A stretch of 63,997 nt of DNA, the filler included, from Salisapilia sapeloensis CBS 127946 (taxonomy: Eukaryota; Protista; Oomycota): assembly GCA_023334545.1 (NCBI GenBank). It is 11 parts of 11 records of this genome, joined end to end, with 100 filler letters (N's around TTAATTAATTAA, not from the genome) between each part and the next. Parts side by side here need not be neighbours in the genome. Positions count along the whole stretch, not along the records: positions 60,136 to 62,897 come from JAADVB010000851.1; 10 more parts are not named here. The stretch is one strand, 5' to 3'. Within the stretch, counting starts at the first letter, position 1. Every line of letters begins with the position of its first letter. This document shows, piece by piece, positions 8,219 through 62,897 of this stretch. The position numbers and the translations under genes were made by a program. The notes under the pieces were generated by a model. The model worked only from the letters and a program-made list of their open reading frames with translations. It was not told the origin of the DNA and ran no database searches.

Positions 8219-10262
8219 TGATACCTTCCTTTATTTCTTTTGTTCCTGCTGTACTCTCGCTATTTCAACCGATGACTTGGGCGAGGATATATATCTAGTC
8301 GACTTAGAAGCGGATCCCGTCTTATCTTGACTTTTCAATTCACTTTCTGTTTCAGTCTTATTCTCATCCAATGTCGATGCAATTTCGGCGCGTTCCTTGG
8401 ATGCTGCTTTGCGTTCTCCTGGAATATAATCTTCCGGTGTGCTATCAGACAACAGCTCATCATCTATGAACCCCAGTAAAACGTCAGATGGGCACGTTAA
8501 AGCAAATAAAACAGCAGTTAAAGTGCAAGTTAAAACAAGCAAAGCGTTACCAAGCTTACTCTGATGTTTGATCTTCTTAGCTGCGTCTAGACCTTTTAGC
8601 ACACTTACCACGCCTGCTATCGATAAGATTTGTGTATGCATTGGCGGCTAGTACATAGCATGAGTTGTATATAAAGCATTCATATCAATATTAACGCACC
8701 ATTATTACTTACTATATACTTCTTTCTCTTTCCTCGCGCAACTTTTCCTGAAGGCTTCGCTGACTCAAGTTGTCGCTAAAGCTCGTAAGCAAATACTGCA
8801 TTTTGAACAATGCTAGTATAAATAGTGAGCCGAGATAAATATCCAAGTTATGCAGTACCGTTGCGTTGAACCTTCAAATCTTGAGCTTTCGCCAGCCTTT
8901 TAGCCTCCTGTCTTCTTTCTAGCCGCGCTTTGTTTCGAGATCGAGCTTGTTGAATCAATTCGTAGCCTGATATGCCGAGAAGAGTAGGCGCGAACGTATC
9001 CATCGTGTTCTCTTTGTCAACATGACCAGAACTCCGTAAATACGGCGGCGTCATCATCCTCTACGTCGATGACTCGGAGCTCATTTGGAGTGCATGGAGA
9101 GCGCAGTTATAAAAAACGAATGGCTTAGAGTGAGTGCTGAAATGTGCTTCCAAGTGGGTTTCCACTTGTCTTCACTATGAAGATTTAAACGTGAATATGG
9201 AAACTTGGTATCTTTCTATGAACTTAACGCCTAAGGAAAGAATGCCTTGGTAGCTGCAAATCTGATTTATTGATTCTTGTTCTGTGTATGGACTTCGCTT
9301 TCTACATATACCTGGATCACCCATCACGACGCAGGTGCGTAGTTACCTCATCCGTGCTGTAATCGTTGGGAAAGCTAAAACCTACCTTTTAAAAACTAGA
9401 CTCTATAGCTTGCGCTTGAAACTTTCGTATATTAGGTTGAAGTTGTATTCATTTCTACCAAAACAATTTTTTTAATTATGGTGCGTTAACGCGTTAGACT
9501 TTTTATTTATGTATCTACTCTTAAGAAAGCTTTTTTGGAAGTGAGATACATTGATATCAAGTTATTTATAATGTCTAGTGTCCTTCCCGAGCATGCAACT
9601 AGCGCGTGCTCGCCTACCGGCCCAGCCATGCGCCGAAAAGGTCTTTACCTATGGTCTATATGTAGACTATATACTATGTATCCGTAAGCTCCATCCATCG
9701 TCCTCTTTCAGTCATCAATTGGTTTGAATATGGAAGCTAAGAAAGCTTCATCTTACGACAGACATACAATTAATGATGAGCGCTGTGCAAGGTAAAGCAT
9801 GTAAAGTTCTAGATATTTTCGTATATTTCCTATCGCTTCCATAATCTGGATATGTTTTTTTCTAATGATTGATCATTATCTGCTGTATGAAGCCTGTGTC
9901 TTCTTCGTAGCCATGAAACTTGCGTCAATATCATCAAATACTATGACCTAGTGTGGCATCTCAGCTACTTCATTTAAAAGTTTCACTAATGCATCACGTT
10001 TTCCAACCAGTTTCGAACAACTCACTGGCAAATATGTCTTCCTAGAGTGACTCTGATGATATGGTGCCATTATATGTTTCTAATAGTGTGTCTTCCTGGA
10101 TGCATGAGCCCAGAGGCTAAAAAGTAACTTATCAACCTAACCAAGCATCTTCAGTCGACAGCCTACACACTAACACAGGTTCTACCGAATTCTCAGCTAT
10201 ATCTAAAAATAAATTTTGATTTCGTTTTCCGCTAACACACTCGCAGCATCCTTTTTTGCCAA

Positions 10263-11014
10263 ATGGATGGCACGTCTCCACCAAGAAGCACAAGCAAATC
10301 CTACCGCCTTACAGCCAAAGTACCTGATGTACCGCTAGATTACTCGTTCATGGGTCTTTCATCACTTTCAGGTATGTATAGTACATTGTTTGAAGCAAAA
10401 AGTTCTCTCTTTAGATTTATAATTTTGGAACAGAGATGTTAAGGCAGGACCCAGTTGGAGGTAAACGAAAGACGGAAGATCTCTACCCGCTTGATATTGG
10501 GAACACGACGGATATCTATGAAGCTCCTGCAGCAACAGAGACCCCTGCTTTGTCACTAAGAGTGAACAATAACCAGATCTCACATCTGAACGATATTGAT
10601 AGCACTTTGGAAAAGTTATTTACAGATCCTTCTCGCTTGCAATGGATTGATTTATCTGGAAATGCATTGACGTCGATTACTTCGACTGCATTCGCCAAAT
10701 ACAAGGAGATCTTTACGTTGCATCTGCACGGAAATAAACTTAAAAGGTATTCTGACATTGATCATTTGGCTGCCTGCTTGCCAAATTTGCATTCACTTAC
10801 GCTTCATGGAAATCCGATTGAAGAGAGGAAACACTACAAGAACTATGTGATCTCTTCATTTCCAAAGCTTCAGCAGTTTAACTTTAGTCGAGTCACCAAA
10901 GGGGACAGATCGAAAGCCGAAACATGGGCTGCAATTTATCACAATGCCATTGAAGCTGCCAGAGAAAATAAGGAAATGCGAAGGTTGAATAAAGACCGTG
11001 AGTATCGGGACTAG
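10263..11014 (+). CDS. LRRC51: Leucine-rich repeat protein, LRRC51-like; 2 exons (10263-10371, 10434-11014)
   Basis: PLDYSF N-terminal motif, LRRs (LQWIDLSGNAL, LHLHGNKL, LHSLTLHGNPIE), LRR cap YKNYVISSFPKLQQFNF. GT-AG intron 10372-10433 keeps the frame. Confidence 0.75.
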
Positions 11015-11891: not shown

Positions 11892-13700
11892 ATGGATCCC
11901 GCTCTTTTGCGCCAAGAGTTTGACTTTGTCATCGTCGGTACTGGTCTTTCTGAATCCATACTTGCTGGTGCATTATCTAGAGCTGGCAAGAGTGTGCTAC
12001 ATTTGGACCAGAACGACTATTACGGTAGCAATTACGCCTCCCTTCCTCTAGAAGCTTTTCTTGATTGGACGCAGAATAAGAAGGCTGAACCATATATTCC
12101 AAGTGAAGATGAATTCCAGGGGCCTCTAATCTCCGATAATTCTCAAGAAGACCCGTCTGAGTCATCCAATGATGACATTTTCATCCCCATGACCTGTCCT
12201 CCATCCTGTACTCTTCTCTCCGAGGCCTTTCGTGACGACGAAACACGTCAGGAGCTCCTGTCCAAGTCATCCCACTTTAGTATCGATCTCCAGCCTCGGT
12301 TACTACTCGCTTCAGAAGACTTAGTCCAAGTCATGATCACCTCTGGCGTCGGTCGCTACTTGGAATTTGCATCTGTAGACCGTAGTTACGTGCACATGAA
12401 CCTATCAGACACTGGCGATAGTATAGTAGATAACGTATGGCAAGTACCTTGTTCGAAGAAGGACGTTTTCCAGTCAAAACTCTTGTCGCCAGTGGAAAAA
12501 CGTATGCTGATGAAATTTTTACAATTCGTAGCAGACTATGGCGAGACACAGATCCAGGGCAAAGACATTTCGACTGAGAATGAACGTGACCTATCTCTTG
12601 GTAGGTCTCTCAAACGTCCCCAGAATAAAGCTCATAAGCTTGAGATCGATTCGGAGCGACTAGAGGAACCTTTCCAACAGGTTCTAGCAGAAGAGTTTAA
12701 GCTTACGACTAAACTACAAGACATCATCGTTTTTAGTGTAGCTTTAGCATCCTTTCCCTATGCAGAAACAAATGCCCATCGGATGCAGATAACAGCAAGA
12801 GACGGACTCTACGCTGTCTACAAGTATGTTGCGTCCATTGGTCGATTCACAGGAGCTGCGTTCCTATCGCCATTGTATGGAGTGAGTGAAGTAGCCCAAA
12901 GCTTCTGTCGATTAAGTGCCGTATACGGTGGCATCTACATCTTACGTGCTCCTCTTCAGGACTTTAAGATCGATACGAAAGATCATATAGTGCGTGGCAT
13001 TCAGTGTGTAGATGGAAGTATGGTACGTACGAAGGAGTTGGTGGTGAATGGAGCGTATTTGAGTTCTTTACTACCGGAGAAACAAGTATGTAAGCAAAAG
13101 ATTCTTCGTGCTGTCTATCTTCTTGATCGACCGATTCGTCCAGATGTGAATCGATGTGTCTTGAGCATCCCACCAGACGATGCGGAGATTAAGAATCCAT
13201 ATGCGATTCAAGTCGTGCAGTTAGATGCTGGTGCATGTGTATGTCGATCTGGAGATTACGTGATCCATTTCGAAATGGTCGAGCCACAGGAGTGGGAAGA
13301 CGAGAGCAAGAAGGAACAAGTGATGATGAAAGCGATGGAACAGTTGCTGCAGAGTCAAGTGGACGATTGGAAGACTTGTGTCCAATGGTCAGCAGTCTTT
13401 AGTATCCCACAGGAATCTTCTGCGACAATTGTGGGAGGTTTGGAACCTACGGACTTGCCATCGAATGTACATGTGACAGAGTTATCGATGGAGAAGGATG
13501 GAATGGAACCTCTAGAGTTACATTTGGAACGAGCGACGTCCAATGCGAAGGAATTATTTGAGAAACTTTGTCCAGGAGAAGAGTTTTTACCAAAGAGTGC
13601 AAGTGCGGAACAAGCAGAGCGGATGGAATGGGCAGAAGAAGAAGGCGCAGTGTTGGAAGCAGCACAAAAGTTGGCCAAGGAAGCACATGTGGAAGAGTAG
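11892..13700 (+). CDS. REP: Rab escort protein (REP/CHM, GDI superfamily)
   Basis: FDFVIVGTGLSESILAGALSRAGKSVLHLDQNDYYGS; FSIDLQPRLL; SGVGRYLEF; FLSPLYGVSEVAQSFCRLSAVYGGIYIL. Insert after the N-terminal motif is typical of REP rather than GDI. Confidence 0.9.
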   Translation: MDPALLRQEFDFVIVGTGLSESILAGALSRAGKSVLHLDQNDYYGSNYASLPLEAFLDWTQNKKAEPYIPSEDEFQGPLISDNSQEDPSESSNDDIFIPMTCPPSCTLLSEAFRDDETRQELLSKSSHFSIDLQPRLLLASEDLVQVMITSGVGRYLEFASVDRSYVHMNLSDTGDSIVDNVWQVPCSKKDVFQSKLLSPVEKRMLMKFLQFVADYGETQIQGKDISTENERDLSLGRSLKRPQNKAHKLEIDSERLEEPFQQVLAEEFKLTTKLQDIIVFSVALASFPYAETNAHRMQITARDGLYAVYKYVASIGRFTGAAFLSPLYGVSEVAQSFCRLSAVYGGIYILRAPLQDFKIDTKDHIVRGIQCVDGSMVRTKELVVNGAYLSSLLPEKQVCKQKILRAVYLLDRPIRPDVNRCVLSIPPDDAEIKNPYAIQVVQLDAGACVCRSGDYVIHFEMVEPQEWEDESKKEQVMMKAMEQLLQSQVDDWKTCVQWSAVFSIPQESSATIVGGLEPTDLPSNVHVTELSMEKDGMEPLELHLERATSNAKELFEKLCPGEEFLPKSASAEQAERMEWAEEEGAVLEAAQKLAKEAHVEE

Positions 13701-13797
13701 ACGTAAGGATTGGGTAGAGCTTTTGTACTTTATAAAGCTATCTTTGGATAGGAAAACACATTTCCACAAGGAAAAGAATCGACTAGTTGGATTCGTT

Positions 13798-14554
13798 TTA
13801 CCATGGTAGTTCCTCGCCATCATATTGAATGAACTTGCCAGACTCATTCATTCCTGCCTTCTCCAGGACTTGGACAAGTCCACTTGCTGATGCTTCTGGT
13901 GTAATCGCATCCGTCAAGTCTAGTGTATTCATCCCTGTTGCAACAAAACCTGGGCTTACAACGATAGAAGCAATGTTGCGATCTTTTAAGTCAATGCTCA
14001 AGGACTTGCCGAGCATACTCACGGCGGCTTTGGATGCTCTGCACGGATAGCTAGTGGACGTTGTATTCTTCGTGATGGATCCCATACCTGAGCCCATGTG
14101 AGCAATCACTGCGAAGCCATTTTGATTGGATTTAACAGCCAGTTCGAGACTTGGGAGCAACGCTCTGGATACGAGAAAAGGACCGACGACATTGATCTCA
14201 TAGTGACGCATCATCTCTGCCTTTGTCACGTCCTCTAAGCCGTCGCTGCAAAAGACACCAGAGTTATTCACCACGAGATGAATCGGTATATCCTGTAGCT
14301 CTCTTCCAGCTACAGATATCGAGACCTCGTCACTGACATCGATTTGTACGATACGCAGGGGGTTTAGCTCTTGTAGCTATCGTAATATCAATATGCATTC
14401 TATGAAGGAGAATTGAATATAGGAGTACATTTTGAACACTTGATGGGTGACGAACAGCAGCAATGAGGTTCCATCCTCTCTGAACGAATTCTTTTGCTAA
14501 AGCAAGTCCAATGCCGCGGTTGCAGCCCGTGATAAGTACATTCTTATTCGCCAT
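13798..14554 (-). CDS. Short-chain dehydrogenase/reductase, C-factor (CsgA)-like; 2 exons (14554-14429, 14376-13798)
   Basis: VLITGCNRGIG (TGxxxGIG), VVNNSG, xRASKAAVSM, VSPGFVATGM. 52-nt GT-AG intron 14377-14428 keeps the frame. Confidence 0.85.
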
Positions 14555-60135: not shown

Positions 60136-60276
60136 GAATGTGAGTGTTCGCCAAGGGATTGCGAACGAAGAGGCGTTCTTCTCGTCTCACGTTGAGTGGA
60201 AGCACATTTCGAAGGACTTGGTGGGCACTCGGGAGCTCCAGCGCAAGCTGGTCAATATCCTAGATGACAACATTCG
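60136..60276 (+). repeat. 141-bp perfect inverted repeat, left copy (right copy 62757-62897)
   Basis: Both contig ends read gaatgtgagtgttcgcc...gatgacaacattcg inward. Confidence 0.95.
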
Positions 60277-61471
60277 ACGTTGGCTTCCAAAAGTCATGAA
60301 GGAAGTTGAAAGTATGCTATGTTCTTCGAGAAAAACATTACTGGACATGGGCGAGAAGACCAATACAGCAGTTGAAAGACAACGCCTTTGGAATGATCGA
60401 GTTCGTCAGTACAATGGCATTCTTCGCGCTGCGTCAAGTGGCACGTACGAAGTGTTTCCTAGAAACTTTGTCAAGTCGAGTAATGAAGATGTCCGCCTAC
60501 GCGCAGTTCTCCGCAAAGAAGAGGCATCTTACAAAAGCTCTCTTGAAGCGACTTGCAATCCGCTTCCGTATATTAAGAAAGATCGAAAGGATGTTGCTGT
60601 GGGTGATTTTGTCGATGTACTCAGAGACAACAAAACTTGGGTCGAAGACGTTGTGACAAAAGTCGAAAACGGAAAAGTTTTATGCAAAGGCAACCATTTT
60701 ACTCAGCCTTCAGAGTGCTGGCGTTTTAACCACGTTTCTATTAAGATGTTCATTCGCGAAAACCGTGGCGATGAGCTAAGCGTTTTTGCGTCAGAACGTG
60801 TCTTTAGAAACTTGGTGAATGAGCTGGTTGAAAAATGGGAAGACTTTACGACTCAGCTCGTCAAACTGTACACGAAGCACTTACTTTGTGTCTCGGACGC
60901 TGCGATTGCGTTCTTAAACATGAACGTTGGTCTCACCCGTGTCTTTCGAACGGCTGCACAAAAAGTTGCAACGAGGCTGTCTGAAAAAGCCATGAACGAA
61001 ATGCTGCTGCTGATTGCGAACGAGAAACGACCGTACTCTATGAATGATCATGTAGAGAAAAAGGTGGATGGACTTCGGAATGAGCATCTGATGTCTCAAA
61101 TCATGGATCGCATTGGACACGGAGATGAGCATGTCAGCACCAAGATTTTAAAGATGGCCCTGTCACAAATGGAAATCAACCAGGAAGATTATGAGGCTCT
61201 TCAGACGGAGTGGACACTAGAAGCCTACGCCGAAGTTGCTGTCCGTCGCGTTTTCGACCGGGTTCCCATGCAACTGAACGACTTGATTATCAATGAATTC
61301 CTCCATCAAATCGATGACAAGTTGCATTCCATGACGGATACGCAGCTTGAGAAGGTGATGCGAGAGACAGAAACCGATCAACGCAAGCGAGAGTATCTGA
61401 ACAGAGAGATTGAAACGCTCATGCTCGCTCGAGACGACTTGGATATATGTAGTCATTTCCATCGACAGTAG
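60137..61471 (+). CDS. Mx-like dynamin-family protein A (end of G domain, stalk, GED); 5' end cut by gap
   Basis: GTRELQRKLVNIL..IR..LP (BSE/hinge), RENRGDELSVFASERVFRNLV (Mx RGRELPGF-like), GED LEAYAEVAVRRVFDRVPMQL. Confidence 0.85.
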   Translation, partial: NVSVRQGIANEEAFFSSHVEWKHISKDLVGTRELQRKLVNILDDNIRRWLPKVMKEVESMLCSSRKTLLDMGEKTNTAVERQRLWNDRVRQYNGILRAASSGTYEVFPRNFVKSSNEDVRLRAVLRKEEASYKSSLEATCNPLPYIKKDRKDVAVGDFVDVLRDNKTWVEDVVTKVENGKVLCKGNHFTQPSECWRFNHVSIKMFIRENRGDELSVFASERVFRNLVNELVEKWEDFTTQLVKLYTKHLLCVSDAAIAFLNMNVGLTRVFRTAAQKVATRLSEKAMNEMLLLIANEKRPYSMNDHVEKKVDGLRNEHLMSQIMDRIGHGDEHVSTKILKMALSQMEINQEDYEALQTEWTLEAYAEVAVRRVFDRVPMQLNDLIINEFLHQIDDKLHSMTDTQLEKVMRETETDQRKREYLNREIETLMLARDDLDICSHFHRQ

Positions 61472-61564
61472 GAACGTAGGATGCAGTTACGAAGACATAA
61501 GTGGAATAAAAAAAGAGTGAACCATTCTTTAAACATTGCAAAGCTACATGTATTTACGCTTGGA

Positions 61565-62896
61565 TTACATGACTAACTCCCACATCCCCTCAATATCTTC
61601 CTTGGCACTCTTCAACGTACTAACCTTCGCTTCCAGATCCTTCCGCCTCTTCGCTTCCGTCGGACGCTCTCGAAGCGCTTTCTCCAGGCTCTCATCACTC
61701 ATCTCAGCAACCTTACGGTCCGTTCGATCAGCAAGTGGCACCACCATTCGGTCATTCAAGTGCATCGGGATGCGATCCAATACACGTACGAGCGCAATCT
61801 TTGCATACGCTTCCAACGCCCATTCCATCTTTAAGGTCTGTCGATCCACCTGCGACAATTTAATAGCAGATACTGCACTTTGGACATCCACAGTCGAACC
61901 AAGTGCACGTTGTGAGACCATACGCAATCTGTCTGTATAGTACGCCTCTTCCAGCTTTTCCAACTCTTCCTCCAGACGTTCATTTAAAGAGTACGGACGA
62001 TGCTCACTCTGCAGTAACGTCTTCATGTCCTCTTTAGCCGTCTTGCTCACCTCTTGCAGTACTTCATGAGAAGCCTTGTGGAAGATGTGAGCCATGCCTT
62101 GGCTTACACCAAGGTACTCTATGGCAGCGTTCGAAAGCAGCTCCAGTTGTCGACGATAATTCTCCAGCAACTTCATCGCCGGTGCTTCCCATCGATCTAC
62201 GAGCATACTCACTAGCGATCGAAAGACACGTTCAGACGTAAAGATCCGGAGTTCGTCTCCTCGGTTCTCCTGGATAAAGTTTTTCAGTCCACAGCGATTG
62301 AATCGCCATCGAGACTCTCCATACCAGTCCTCTGAATGGATTTTACAGCGGATGTCTGTGTGGTTACAACTGATGACCACGTCTTCCTTCCACCCTACCT
62401 CCTCACTGATGTACAGATCGACGTGATCTCCTTTCGCAACGTTCTTCTTAAAGGTCTTTAGGAAGGGGAGCGGATGGCAGGTGGCATCCATACTAGCTTT
62501 AAACTCATTGTCTAGAGCGCTGAGGACAGCTCTCGTACGGACGTTTGTGGAATTACAACCGACAAAATCGGGCGGAAAGCTGTCATATCTACCGGACGTG
62601 GCACTCATTATAATCTGGCTGTACGCACGCAGTTTACTACTAAGATAGTACCGACGCGATTGAATAGACTCCATTTTGGTACCCATGCCCATCAACTCCG
62701 CTTCAGCCTTTGACAGATTCGTTTTAATTTCCGACAGAACAGACGGCAAACTAGCACGAATGTTGTCATCTAGGATATTGACCAGCTTGCGCTGGAGCTC
62801 CCGAGTGCCCACCAAGTCCTTCGAAATGTGCTTCCACTCAACGTGAGACGAGAAGAACGCCTCTTCGTTCGCAATCCCTTGGCGAACACTCACATT
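61565..62896 (-). CDS. Mx-like dynamin-family protein B, convergent with A; 5' end cut by gap
   Basis: QENRGDELRIFTSERVFRSLV, GED LEAYAKIALVRVLDRIPMHL. Confidence 0.85.
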   Translation of the reverse strand, partial: NVSVRQGIANEEAFFSSHVEWKHISKDLVGTRELQRKLVNILDDNIRASLPSVLSEIKTNLSKAEAELMGMGTKMESIQSRRYYLSSKLRAYSQIIMSATSGRYDSFPPDFVGCNSTNVRTRAVLSALDNEFKASMDATCHPLPFLKTFKKNVAKGDHVDLYISEEVGWKEDVVISCNHTDIRCKIHSEDWYGESRWRFNRCGLKNFIQENRGDELRIFTSERVFRSLVSMLVDRWEAPAMKLLENYRRQLELLSNAAIEYLGVSQGMAHIFHKASHEVLQEVSKTAKEDMKTLLQSEHRPYSLNERLEEELEKLEEAYYTDRLRMVSQRALGSTVDVQSAVSAIKLSQVDRQTLKMEWALEAYAKIALVRVLDRIPMHLNDRMVVPLADRTDRKVAEMSDESLEKALRERPTEAKRRKDLEAKVSTLKSAKEDIEGMWELVM

Positions 62897-62897
62897 C
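62757..62897 (-). repeat. 141-bp perfect inverted repeat, right copy
   Basis: Reverse complement of 60136-60276. Confidence 0.95.

Follow-up and report, generated by a model that had tools for sequence, protein, structure and literature searches.

How can two neighbouring genes be identical to the letter in one part and only about one-third identical in the rest? The question is raised by a short contig, JAADVB010000851.1, from the oomycete Salisapilia sapeloensis CBS 127946 (assembly GCA_023334545.1). We studied it as positions 60136–62897 of a 63,997-nt stretch of DNA assembled from parts of 11 records of this genome (the window; all positions are given in its numbering). The piece is 2762 nt long, has a G+C content of 47% and contains no N. 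It carries the 3' parts of two genes that we assign to an Mx-like dynamin family. The genes lie tail to tail, and their proteins are identical at the end of the G domain and strongly diverged beyond it. We consider it probable that these are paralogues, that gene conversion, or else a single recent event in which one 5' part replaced the other, has left them with a common G-domain end, and that the assembler cut the contig at the repeat.

Two convergent genes share a perfect inverted repeat

Two long open reading frames (ORFs) converge on a very short spacer, and each is open right up to its contig edge. Gene positions are from ORF calls, and the spacer was read from the sequence:

60137–61471, + strand: gene 1, 3' part; 444 codons plus stop
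61565–62896, – strand (read from 62896 to 61565): gene 2, 3' part; 443 codons plus stop
61472–61564, no strand: spacer between the two stop codons; 93 nt

Gene 1 encodes, in order, the end of the G domain, hinge 2, helix 2 of the bundle signalling element (BSE), the stalk and GED/BSE helix 3, followed by the stop codon. Gene 2 has the same architecture. Both genes are free of introns, and the contig edge cuts off the 5' end of each. Gene 1 aligns over its full length with residues 262–704 of a 708-residue relative, P0002. Because full-length relatives measure 681–726 aa and match these genes from about residue 262 onward, the ~260 N-terminal residues of each protein would lie beyond the contig. 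Each gene, when complete, would thus encode ~700 aa.

Comparison of the start of the contig with the reverse complement of its end showed identity over exactly 141 nt:

60136–60276, + strand: left arm of the repeat; 141 nt, coding for the final 47 G-domain residues, up to the equivalent of dynamin-1 R290
62757–62897, – strand: right arm of the repeat; 141 nt, with the same coding content, for gene 2

The two sequences first differ at nt 142, in the third position of codon 47 (CGA versus CGT). Beyond it, ungapped nucleotide identity is 35–48% per 60-nt interval over the next 300 nt. At the protein level, identity is 100% for residues 1–47 and 36% across the other 394 aligned codons, where synonymous divergence is saturated (pS 0.77) and nonsynonymous divergence (dN) is 0.67. 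These values agree with an original prediction, which had described convergent genes 93 bp apart whose first 141 bp are identical, whose identity stops abruptly, and whose remainder is roughly one-third identical. That prediction also had the contig breaking inside the repeat at both ends, and the block is indeed present at each, so the genome would have two physical copies of it.

Silent sites make the same cut. Four-fold degenerate sites of conserved residues differ at 0 of 19 positions within the block and at 47 of 65 outside it (P ~2.5e-11). Constraint at the protein level therefore cannot account for the identity. Gene conversion is recognized by identity that includes silent sites and by diverged flanks; the block has the former, and its inner flank, the only one visible, is diverged.

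The identity ends at hinge 2

The motif NIR-ASLP or NIR-RWLP at the edge of the block aligns with HIRDTLP of dynamins. In coordinates taken against dynamin-1 chains, P51 corresponds to P294, and LP to L293–P294:

60287–60289, + strand: hinge-2 proline P51 of gene 1; 4 codons past the end of identity, IRDTLP being aligned with IRASLP
62744–62746, – strand: hinge-2 proline P51 of gene 2; placed by alignment to dynamin-1

In dynamin 1, the G domain and the BSE are connected by hinge 2 (residues I289–P294), and the BSE and the stalk by hinge 1 (PMC8437954). Aligned in this way, the common block is the end of the G domain, and all that follows from hinge 2 onward (BSE helix 2, stalk and GED) is divergent. 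The break had originally been placed at DDNIR, just before an LP hinge taken to separate G domain and BSE from the stalk. The position was right, but the hinge was misnamed: it is hinge 2, between G domain and BSE.

An exon boundary was considered as the cause of the sharp edge and rejected, since the genes are intronless. A chytrid relative (L006) is split into two blocks ~60–80 codons downstream of the breakpoint, not at the breakpoint itself.

The length of the repeat and the assembler

De Bruijn assemblers print each unitig together with the branching-node k-mers at its two ends. If a unitig departs from a branching k-mer by one exit and comes back by the other to that k-mer's reverse complement, it therefore carries a perfect inverted terminal repeat of exactly k, the appearance expected of a collapsed inverted repeat around a unique centre. 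We take 141 to be the largest k in the default k-list of MEGAHIT. The 141-nt length is very probably the assembler's overlap at a collapsed inverted repeat, and the true repeat would then be at least 141 nt and possibly much longer. Because the identity is as long as k, its inner edge is real information and its outer edge is not. The original prediction had taken 141 bp at face value as the repeat length; most likely the figure is the assembler's k, and it serves as a lower bound. There is a practical warning here: when the two ends of a short contig are identical in inverted orientation over exactly one assembler k, this is the sign of a collapsed repeat and is silent on the size of that repeat.

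The genes belong to an Mx-like dynamin family

Both proteins matched Pfam Dynamin_M (PF01031), with E-values of 1e-23 for gene 1 and 7e-28 for gene 2, far over the 28.5-bit cut-off. For GED (PF02212; cut-off 21.4 bits), gene 2 scored above the threshold (23.8) and gene 1 slightly below it (20.3), and both align to the GED of relatives. No PH match was found in either gene with Pfam. The proteins end with BSE helix 3, which fits Mx-like proteins that lack a PH or proline-rich domain.

An exhaustive HMMER search returned 541 relatives, the best at 31–35% identity. Named relatives come from the oomycetes Lagenidium giganteum and Pythium insidiosum, with one further relative on a 1.2-Mb NCBI contig, and from the chytrids Physocladia, Chytriomyces and Obelidium (annotated 'interferon-induced GTP-binding protein Mx'). 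Three relatives (P0002, P0004 and P0015) bear the G domain PF00350. Compared with solved structures, P0002, the closest full-length relative, matched MxA/MxB at E-values of 6.5e-60 to ~1e-54, versus ~1e-44 for Vps1 or dynamin. The stalk by itself gave similar scores for Mx and Dnm1. As judged from sequence, and resting on the G domain of relative P0002, the family can fairly be called 'Mx-like'. The family originally proposed for these genes accordingly stands, given the Dynamin_M and GED matches, the BSE and stalk fold described below, and a relative's G domain nearest to MxA/MxB.

A quick maximum-likelihood tree was built from the part after residue 47, so that the converted block was excluded. 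It had 40 rows, and those with fewer than 300 residues in this part were dropped. Gene 1 and gene 2 came out as sisters (Shimodaira–Hasegawa-like approximate likelihood ratio test, 99) on long branches of 0.82 and 0.91, within a clade that also holds oomycete sequences and two Logan contigs. On this tree the two genes appear to be an old local duplication of which both copies were kept intact. Both genes also look functional, to judge from ORFs that are intact over ~443 codons and from their retention of every one of the 37 invariant columns of a family alignment of 7 sequences.

A giant-virus origin was considered, and nothing points there: viral dynamins reached E ~1e-4 in the fold search versus ~1e-8 for cellular ones, and no IMG/VR relative turned up. 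Searches of viral contigs with a single protein, and of metagenome and viral contigs with the family alignment, gave pattern matches and no confirmed relatives. A word-based protein search with gene 2 gave zero matches, and neither it nor the HMMER search recovered the query's own sequence.

A perfect G-domain tract in Lagenidium

The best hit, the Lagenidium giganteum entry DAZ94107.1 (1418 aa), consists of two complete head-to-tail dynamin genes that were fused by annotation (L003; NSDO01000419.1, 10001–14985). The two copies lie ~2834 nt apart on one 67-kb contig and are ~70% identical outside a perfect tract. The tract is a 639-nt run, present at 10359–10997 and at 13193–13831, which encodes G-domain residues 120–333. 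Its flanks are 55–90% identical on both sides. The run stops 9 residues after the equivalent of the hinge proline, at most 13 codons from the Salisapilia breakpoint. It is a textbook conversion tract, and it shows that an inverted arrangement is not needed for the pattern.

The Lagenidium pair resembles the Salisapilia pair in belonging to the same clade, in being adjacent paralogues, in having a perfect nucleotide block in the G domain, and in the near-equal end of that block. It differs in lying head to tail rather than tail to tail and in having much less diverged stalks (55–70% aa identity). In addition, the whole of the Lagenidium block is visible (639 nt), and it stops short of the 5' end of the gene.

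Predicted structure and the stalk tip

We modelled gene 2 with AlphaFold2 from a 44-sequence alignment. The model (pLDDT 92.7, pTM 0.80) is a four-helix stalk with BSE helices, and Foldseek matched it with a probability of 1.00 to dynamin 1, Drp1, MxA and MxB over ~440 columns. Its elements, in residues of gene 2, are:

4–17: helix ending the G domain
31–71: one long helix, which passes through hinge 2 into BSE helix 2
78–101 and 121–138: stalk helices alpha1
158–199: small beta-sheet domain
202–262 and 266–297: stalk helices alpha2 and alpha3
298–348: helical hairpin (helices 306–330 and 338–345)
349–397: stalk helix alpha4
412–442: BSE helix 3

Two elements stand between stalk helices:

62282–62449, – strand: beta insert of gene 2 (residues 150–205; strands 158–199), between alpha1C and alpha2, at the L2 position; pLDDT ~90
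60584–60748, + strand: beta insert of gene 1 (residues 150–204), placed by alignment
61853–62005, – strand: alpha3–alpha4 segment of gene 2 (residues 298–348); 25% identity between the genes, with an indel

The beta insert comprises ~50 residues with the motif VAxGDxV...W...W and is conserved across the Mx-like subfamily, including relatives L001–L004. It matches no family in Pfam. The alpha3–alpha4 connection, ~50 residues of helix and loop, occupies the site of Mx loop L4 and of the dynamin PH domain. Identity between the two genes is lowest in alpha1N, alpha3 and the L4-position hairpin (25% each) and highest in alpha2 (51%) and alpha4 (45%). From the topology of the helix bundle, the beta domain and the hairpin would occupy the same distal tip of the stalk, and the beta insert is a possible binding module. 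In our view, this beta-domain tip of the Mx-like subfamily and the boundary at hinge 2 in two independent lineages are the new results of most use.

Origin of the shared block

We propose that the contig represents the unique centre of a near-palindromic locus, where two lineage-specific and ancient Mx-like paralogues lie tail to tail. The 3' coding end of the G domain, and probably more, would form a perfect inverted repeat that ends exactly at hinge 2. Either intrachromosomal conversion between the copies or a very recent swap of one copy's 5' part for the other's would have made it so. The assembler would then have collapsed the repeat, cut the contig there and left its 141-nt k-mer on both ends. 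The outcome would be a single GTPase 'engine' sequence combined with two highly dissimilar BSE/stalk/GED modules. In these modules, the distal tips (the L2 beta insert and the L4-position hairpin) differ strongly.

Several points weigh against this reading. The argument from k = 141 rests on a numerical coincidence, the assembler behind the contig being presumed. No zone of intermediate identity lies just inside the boundary, residues 48–110 being 30% identical. Such an abrupt edge is better explained by one event of recent date, or by selection against longer tracts reaching into the BSE and stalk, than by long-running conversion with variable ends. The stalks are ~45% identical in nucleotides, so conversion needs G-domain DNA that is still similar enough to pair. 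The contig carries 141 nt of the repeat and no more; the repeat could barely exceed k, and one of the copies might be a partial duplicate that lacks its 5' end. Finally, a 28-mer from the repeat had no match among JGI metagenome contigs, the only DNA collection searched with it, protein searches found nothing closer than 31–35% identity, and exact-protein look-ups found neither gene on record.

A partial inverted duplication is the alternative that we rate highest, though we think it unlikely. One gene would be complete, and the other would be a stalk gene or remnant that recently gained a short inverted copy of the G-domain end, making it a 5'-truncated or short-form paralogue and not a full GTPase. 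The 141 nt of repeat on the contig is compatible with so short a copy, and the Lagenidium tract, too, spans part of a G domain (residues 120–333). Partial or decayed copies occur elsewhere: a decayed second copy lies downstream of the gene in relative L004, and among short Mx-like forms of plants, DRP4A is reported to have arisen repeatedly from DRP4C (PMC11789081). Against a remnant, both frames are open to the contig ends and are joined in frame to a stalk. Moreover, for all their saturated divergence, the two stalks have each stayed intact over ~395 codons; this points to long-term selection on both as parts of working proteins.

Could the assembler have made the identity itself? The two stalks would then be truly linked, the 141-mer at one end would be a false join in the graph (from a smaller-k round, a related strain or another paralogue), and the true 5' regions would differ. 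The identity is exactly one assembler k long. The contig is short, and it seems to come from an assembly that is absent from the protein collections and from the JGI metagenome contigs. But for a k-mer to stand at the end of a unitig, it must have occurred in the input, together with the base that follows, on both sides, so each junction was backed by sequence. In each gene, the reading frame is also kept across the junction, which lies at a boundary between domains. Furthermore, Lagenidium, an unrelated genome assembly, has the same kind of perfect block at the equivalent place inside one 67-kb contig. We hold an artefact of this kind to be quite improbable.

Homologous recombination between inverted repeats inverts the DNA between them. 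The original prediction had raised the possibility of a functional switch of this kind, in which flipping the 2.5-kb middle changes the pairing of stalk, G domain and promoter and so gives two expression states; although perfect inverted repeats do flank the segment, and are the sole basis of the idea, we judge it highly improbable, since a flip would be silent in the products if the repeat covers the whole 5' part, the 2.76-kb piece holds dynamin ORFs alone, with no recombinase gene, recombinase-type site or promoter, the contig shows a single orientation, and the Lagenidium block, lying head to tail where inversion is impossible, needs no switch.

Homogenization of the G domain with diverging stalks is likely a better explanation than such a switch, because a 639-nt tract lies at the equivalent place in Lagenidium and conversion in mammals is likewise restricted to the BSE–GTPase region (PMC4687636). 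This half of the original prediction thus gains support from both parallels and has published precedent in the Mx family; its premise of two full genes is still presumptive. The 141-bp figure and the 'invertible cassette' deserve no weight unless reads back them.

A bolder form of the proposal, to which we give little credence, is a true palindrome. Its long perfect arms would be two complete units of promoter and G domain, kept identical by continual recombination, and its 2.5-kb centre would hold two ancient targeting modules (BSE/stalk/GED with a beta-domain tip) maintained by selection. Recombination would homogenize the engine and flip the centre, and the products, their G-domain dimer interfaces being identical, would cross-activate in mixed assemblies. 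If so, the three cases of Salisapilia, Lagenidium and mammals would make concerted evolution bounded by domains, at hinge 2, a general design rule of Mx-type immune GTPases.

Other features of the piece

The stop codons are just 93 nt apart, so the 3' ends of the two transcripts must abut or overlap. An AATAAA lies at 61505–61510 on the + strand, 34 nt past the stop of gene 1. The – strand of the spacer (61472–61564) has no canonical signal. The remaining ORFs of the piece are at most 134 aa long, and every one overlaps gene 1 or gene 2. A scan of the piece for bacterial promoters and terminators gave background levels and is irrelevant to a eukaryote. The piece has no feature that would point to human DNA, an animal virus or a toxin.

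Loci of other relatives

Local duplication is common in the Mx-like family; the chytrid genes are single. In relative L004 (ENA GROS21-1 scaffold_1520), the dynamin stalk is present a second time at 9600–10900, ~2.6 kb downstream of the intact gene. This copy is 76–82% identical in patches and has an in-frame stop, which marks it as a tandem duplicate in decay. Repeated ORFs of ~130 aa form an array further downstream.

Two Logan contigs that carry nearest relatives, L001 (492–8026; SRR15309574) and L002 (410–8093; SRR15309479), are compact and intronless. Their dynamins are 44% identical and share the same four-gene neighbourhood: the dynamin, a convergent 408–410-aa protein of no known family, a 774–814-aa MJ1566_N/MJ1567 protein and a TPR protein. 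In the atlas, the clusters closest to the MJ1566_N/MJ1567 protein come from eukaryotes, for the most part Oomycota, which we treat as a lead only. We considered whether the convergent 410-aa neighbour of P0002 is a cryptic dynamin stalk and rejected this. A prokaryotic or defence-island origin of the contigs of the closest relatives was also rejected: NCBIfam gave zero matches, PADLOC gave matches at chance level only, and the atlas clusters closest to the neighbour protein are those eukaryotic ones.

Comparison with known systems

In Y-chromosome palindromes and plastid inverted repeats, intramolecular recombination preserves the identity of the arms and is able to invert the spacer as well. 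Like these palindromes and large inverted repeats, the Salisapilia locus has inverted copies around a short unique spacer. It differs in that the boundary of the arms falls inside two coding regions, at a domain hinge, and in that the spacer holds the 3' halves of both genes.

As Langley et al. (2025) describe, Mx-like lineages occur in fungi, stramenopiles and other protists (MxF1/MxF2, DRP4, PADS), and a PADS clade is common to oomycetes and giant viruses (PMC11789081). The Salisapilia genes resemble these fungal, stramenopile and protist Mx-like dynamins in having oomycete and chytrid relatives, in the best match of the P0002 G domain to MxA/MxB, and in having no PH domain. Their G domain lies largely off the contig, and they are only 31–35% identical to any database protein; the stalk beta insert goes unmentioned in the parts of PMC11789081 consulted. 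A pattern recurring from protists to mammals would fit the recent view of Mx-like proteins as ancient eukaryotic defence genes, and the Salisapilia proteins may have an antiviral role.

The closest precedent is mammalian. Between MxA and MxB, gene conversion is confined to the BSE–GTPase region (Mitchell et al. 2015, PMC4687636), and models of 'tolerated conversion' and of 'favoured conversion' have been published for Mx (PMC4687636). In both systems, neighbouring Mx-type paralogues are homogenized in the G-domain region and differ in the parts that set target specificity, so both models apply directly. Unlike the mammalian genes, those of Salisapilia are intronless and convergent and come from a microbial eukaryote. 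Their block is 100% identical, with a sharp end at hinge 2, and their stalks are far more diverged (36% aa identity). Mammalian conversion, moreover, was deduced from cross-species phylogenies and not from a perfect repeat. If reads confirm the arrangement proposed here, the locus would be a very clean case of neighbouring Mx paralogues that share GTPase sequence through recombination while their stalks diverge, a pattern so far inferred mainly from mammalian phylogenies, with the boundary falling at a mechanical hinge of the protein. That the pattern is seen in this protist contig, in the Lagenidium genome and also in mammals suggests that it recurs within the family and is not a mammalian oddity.

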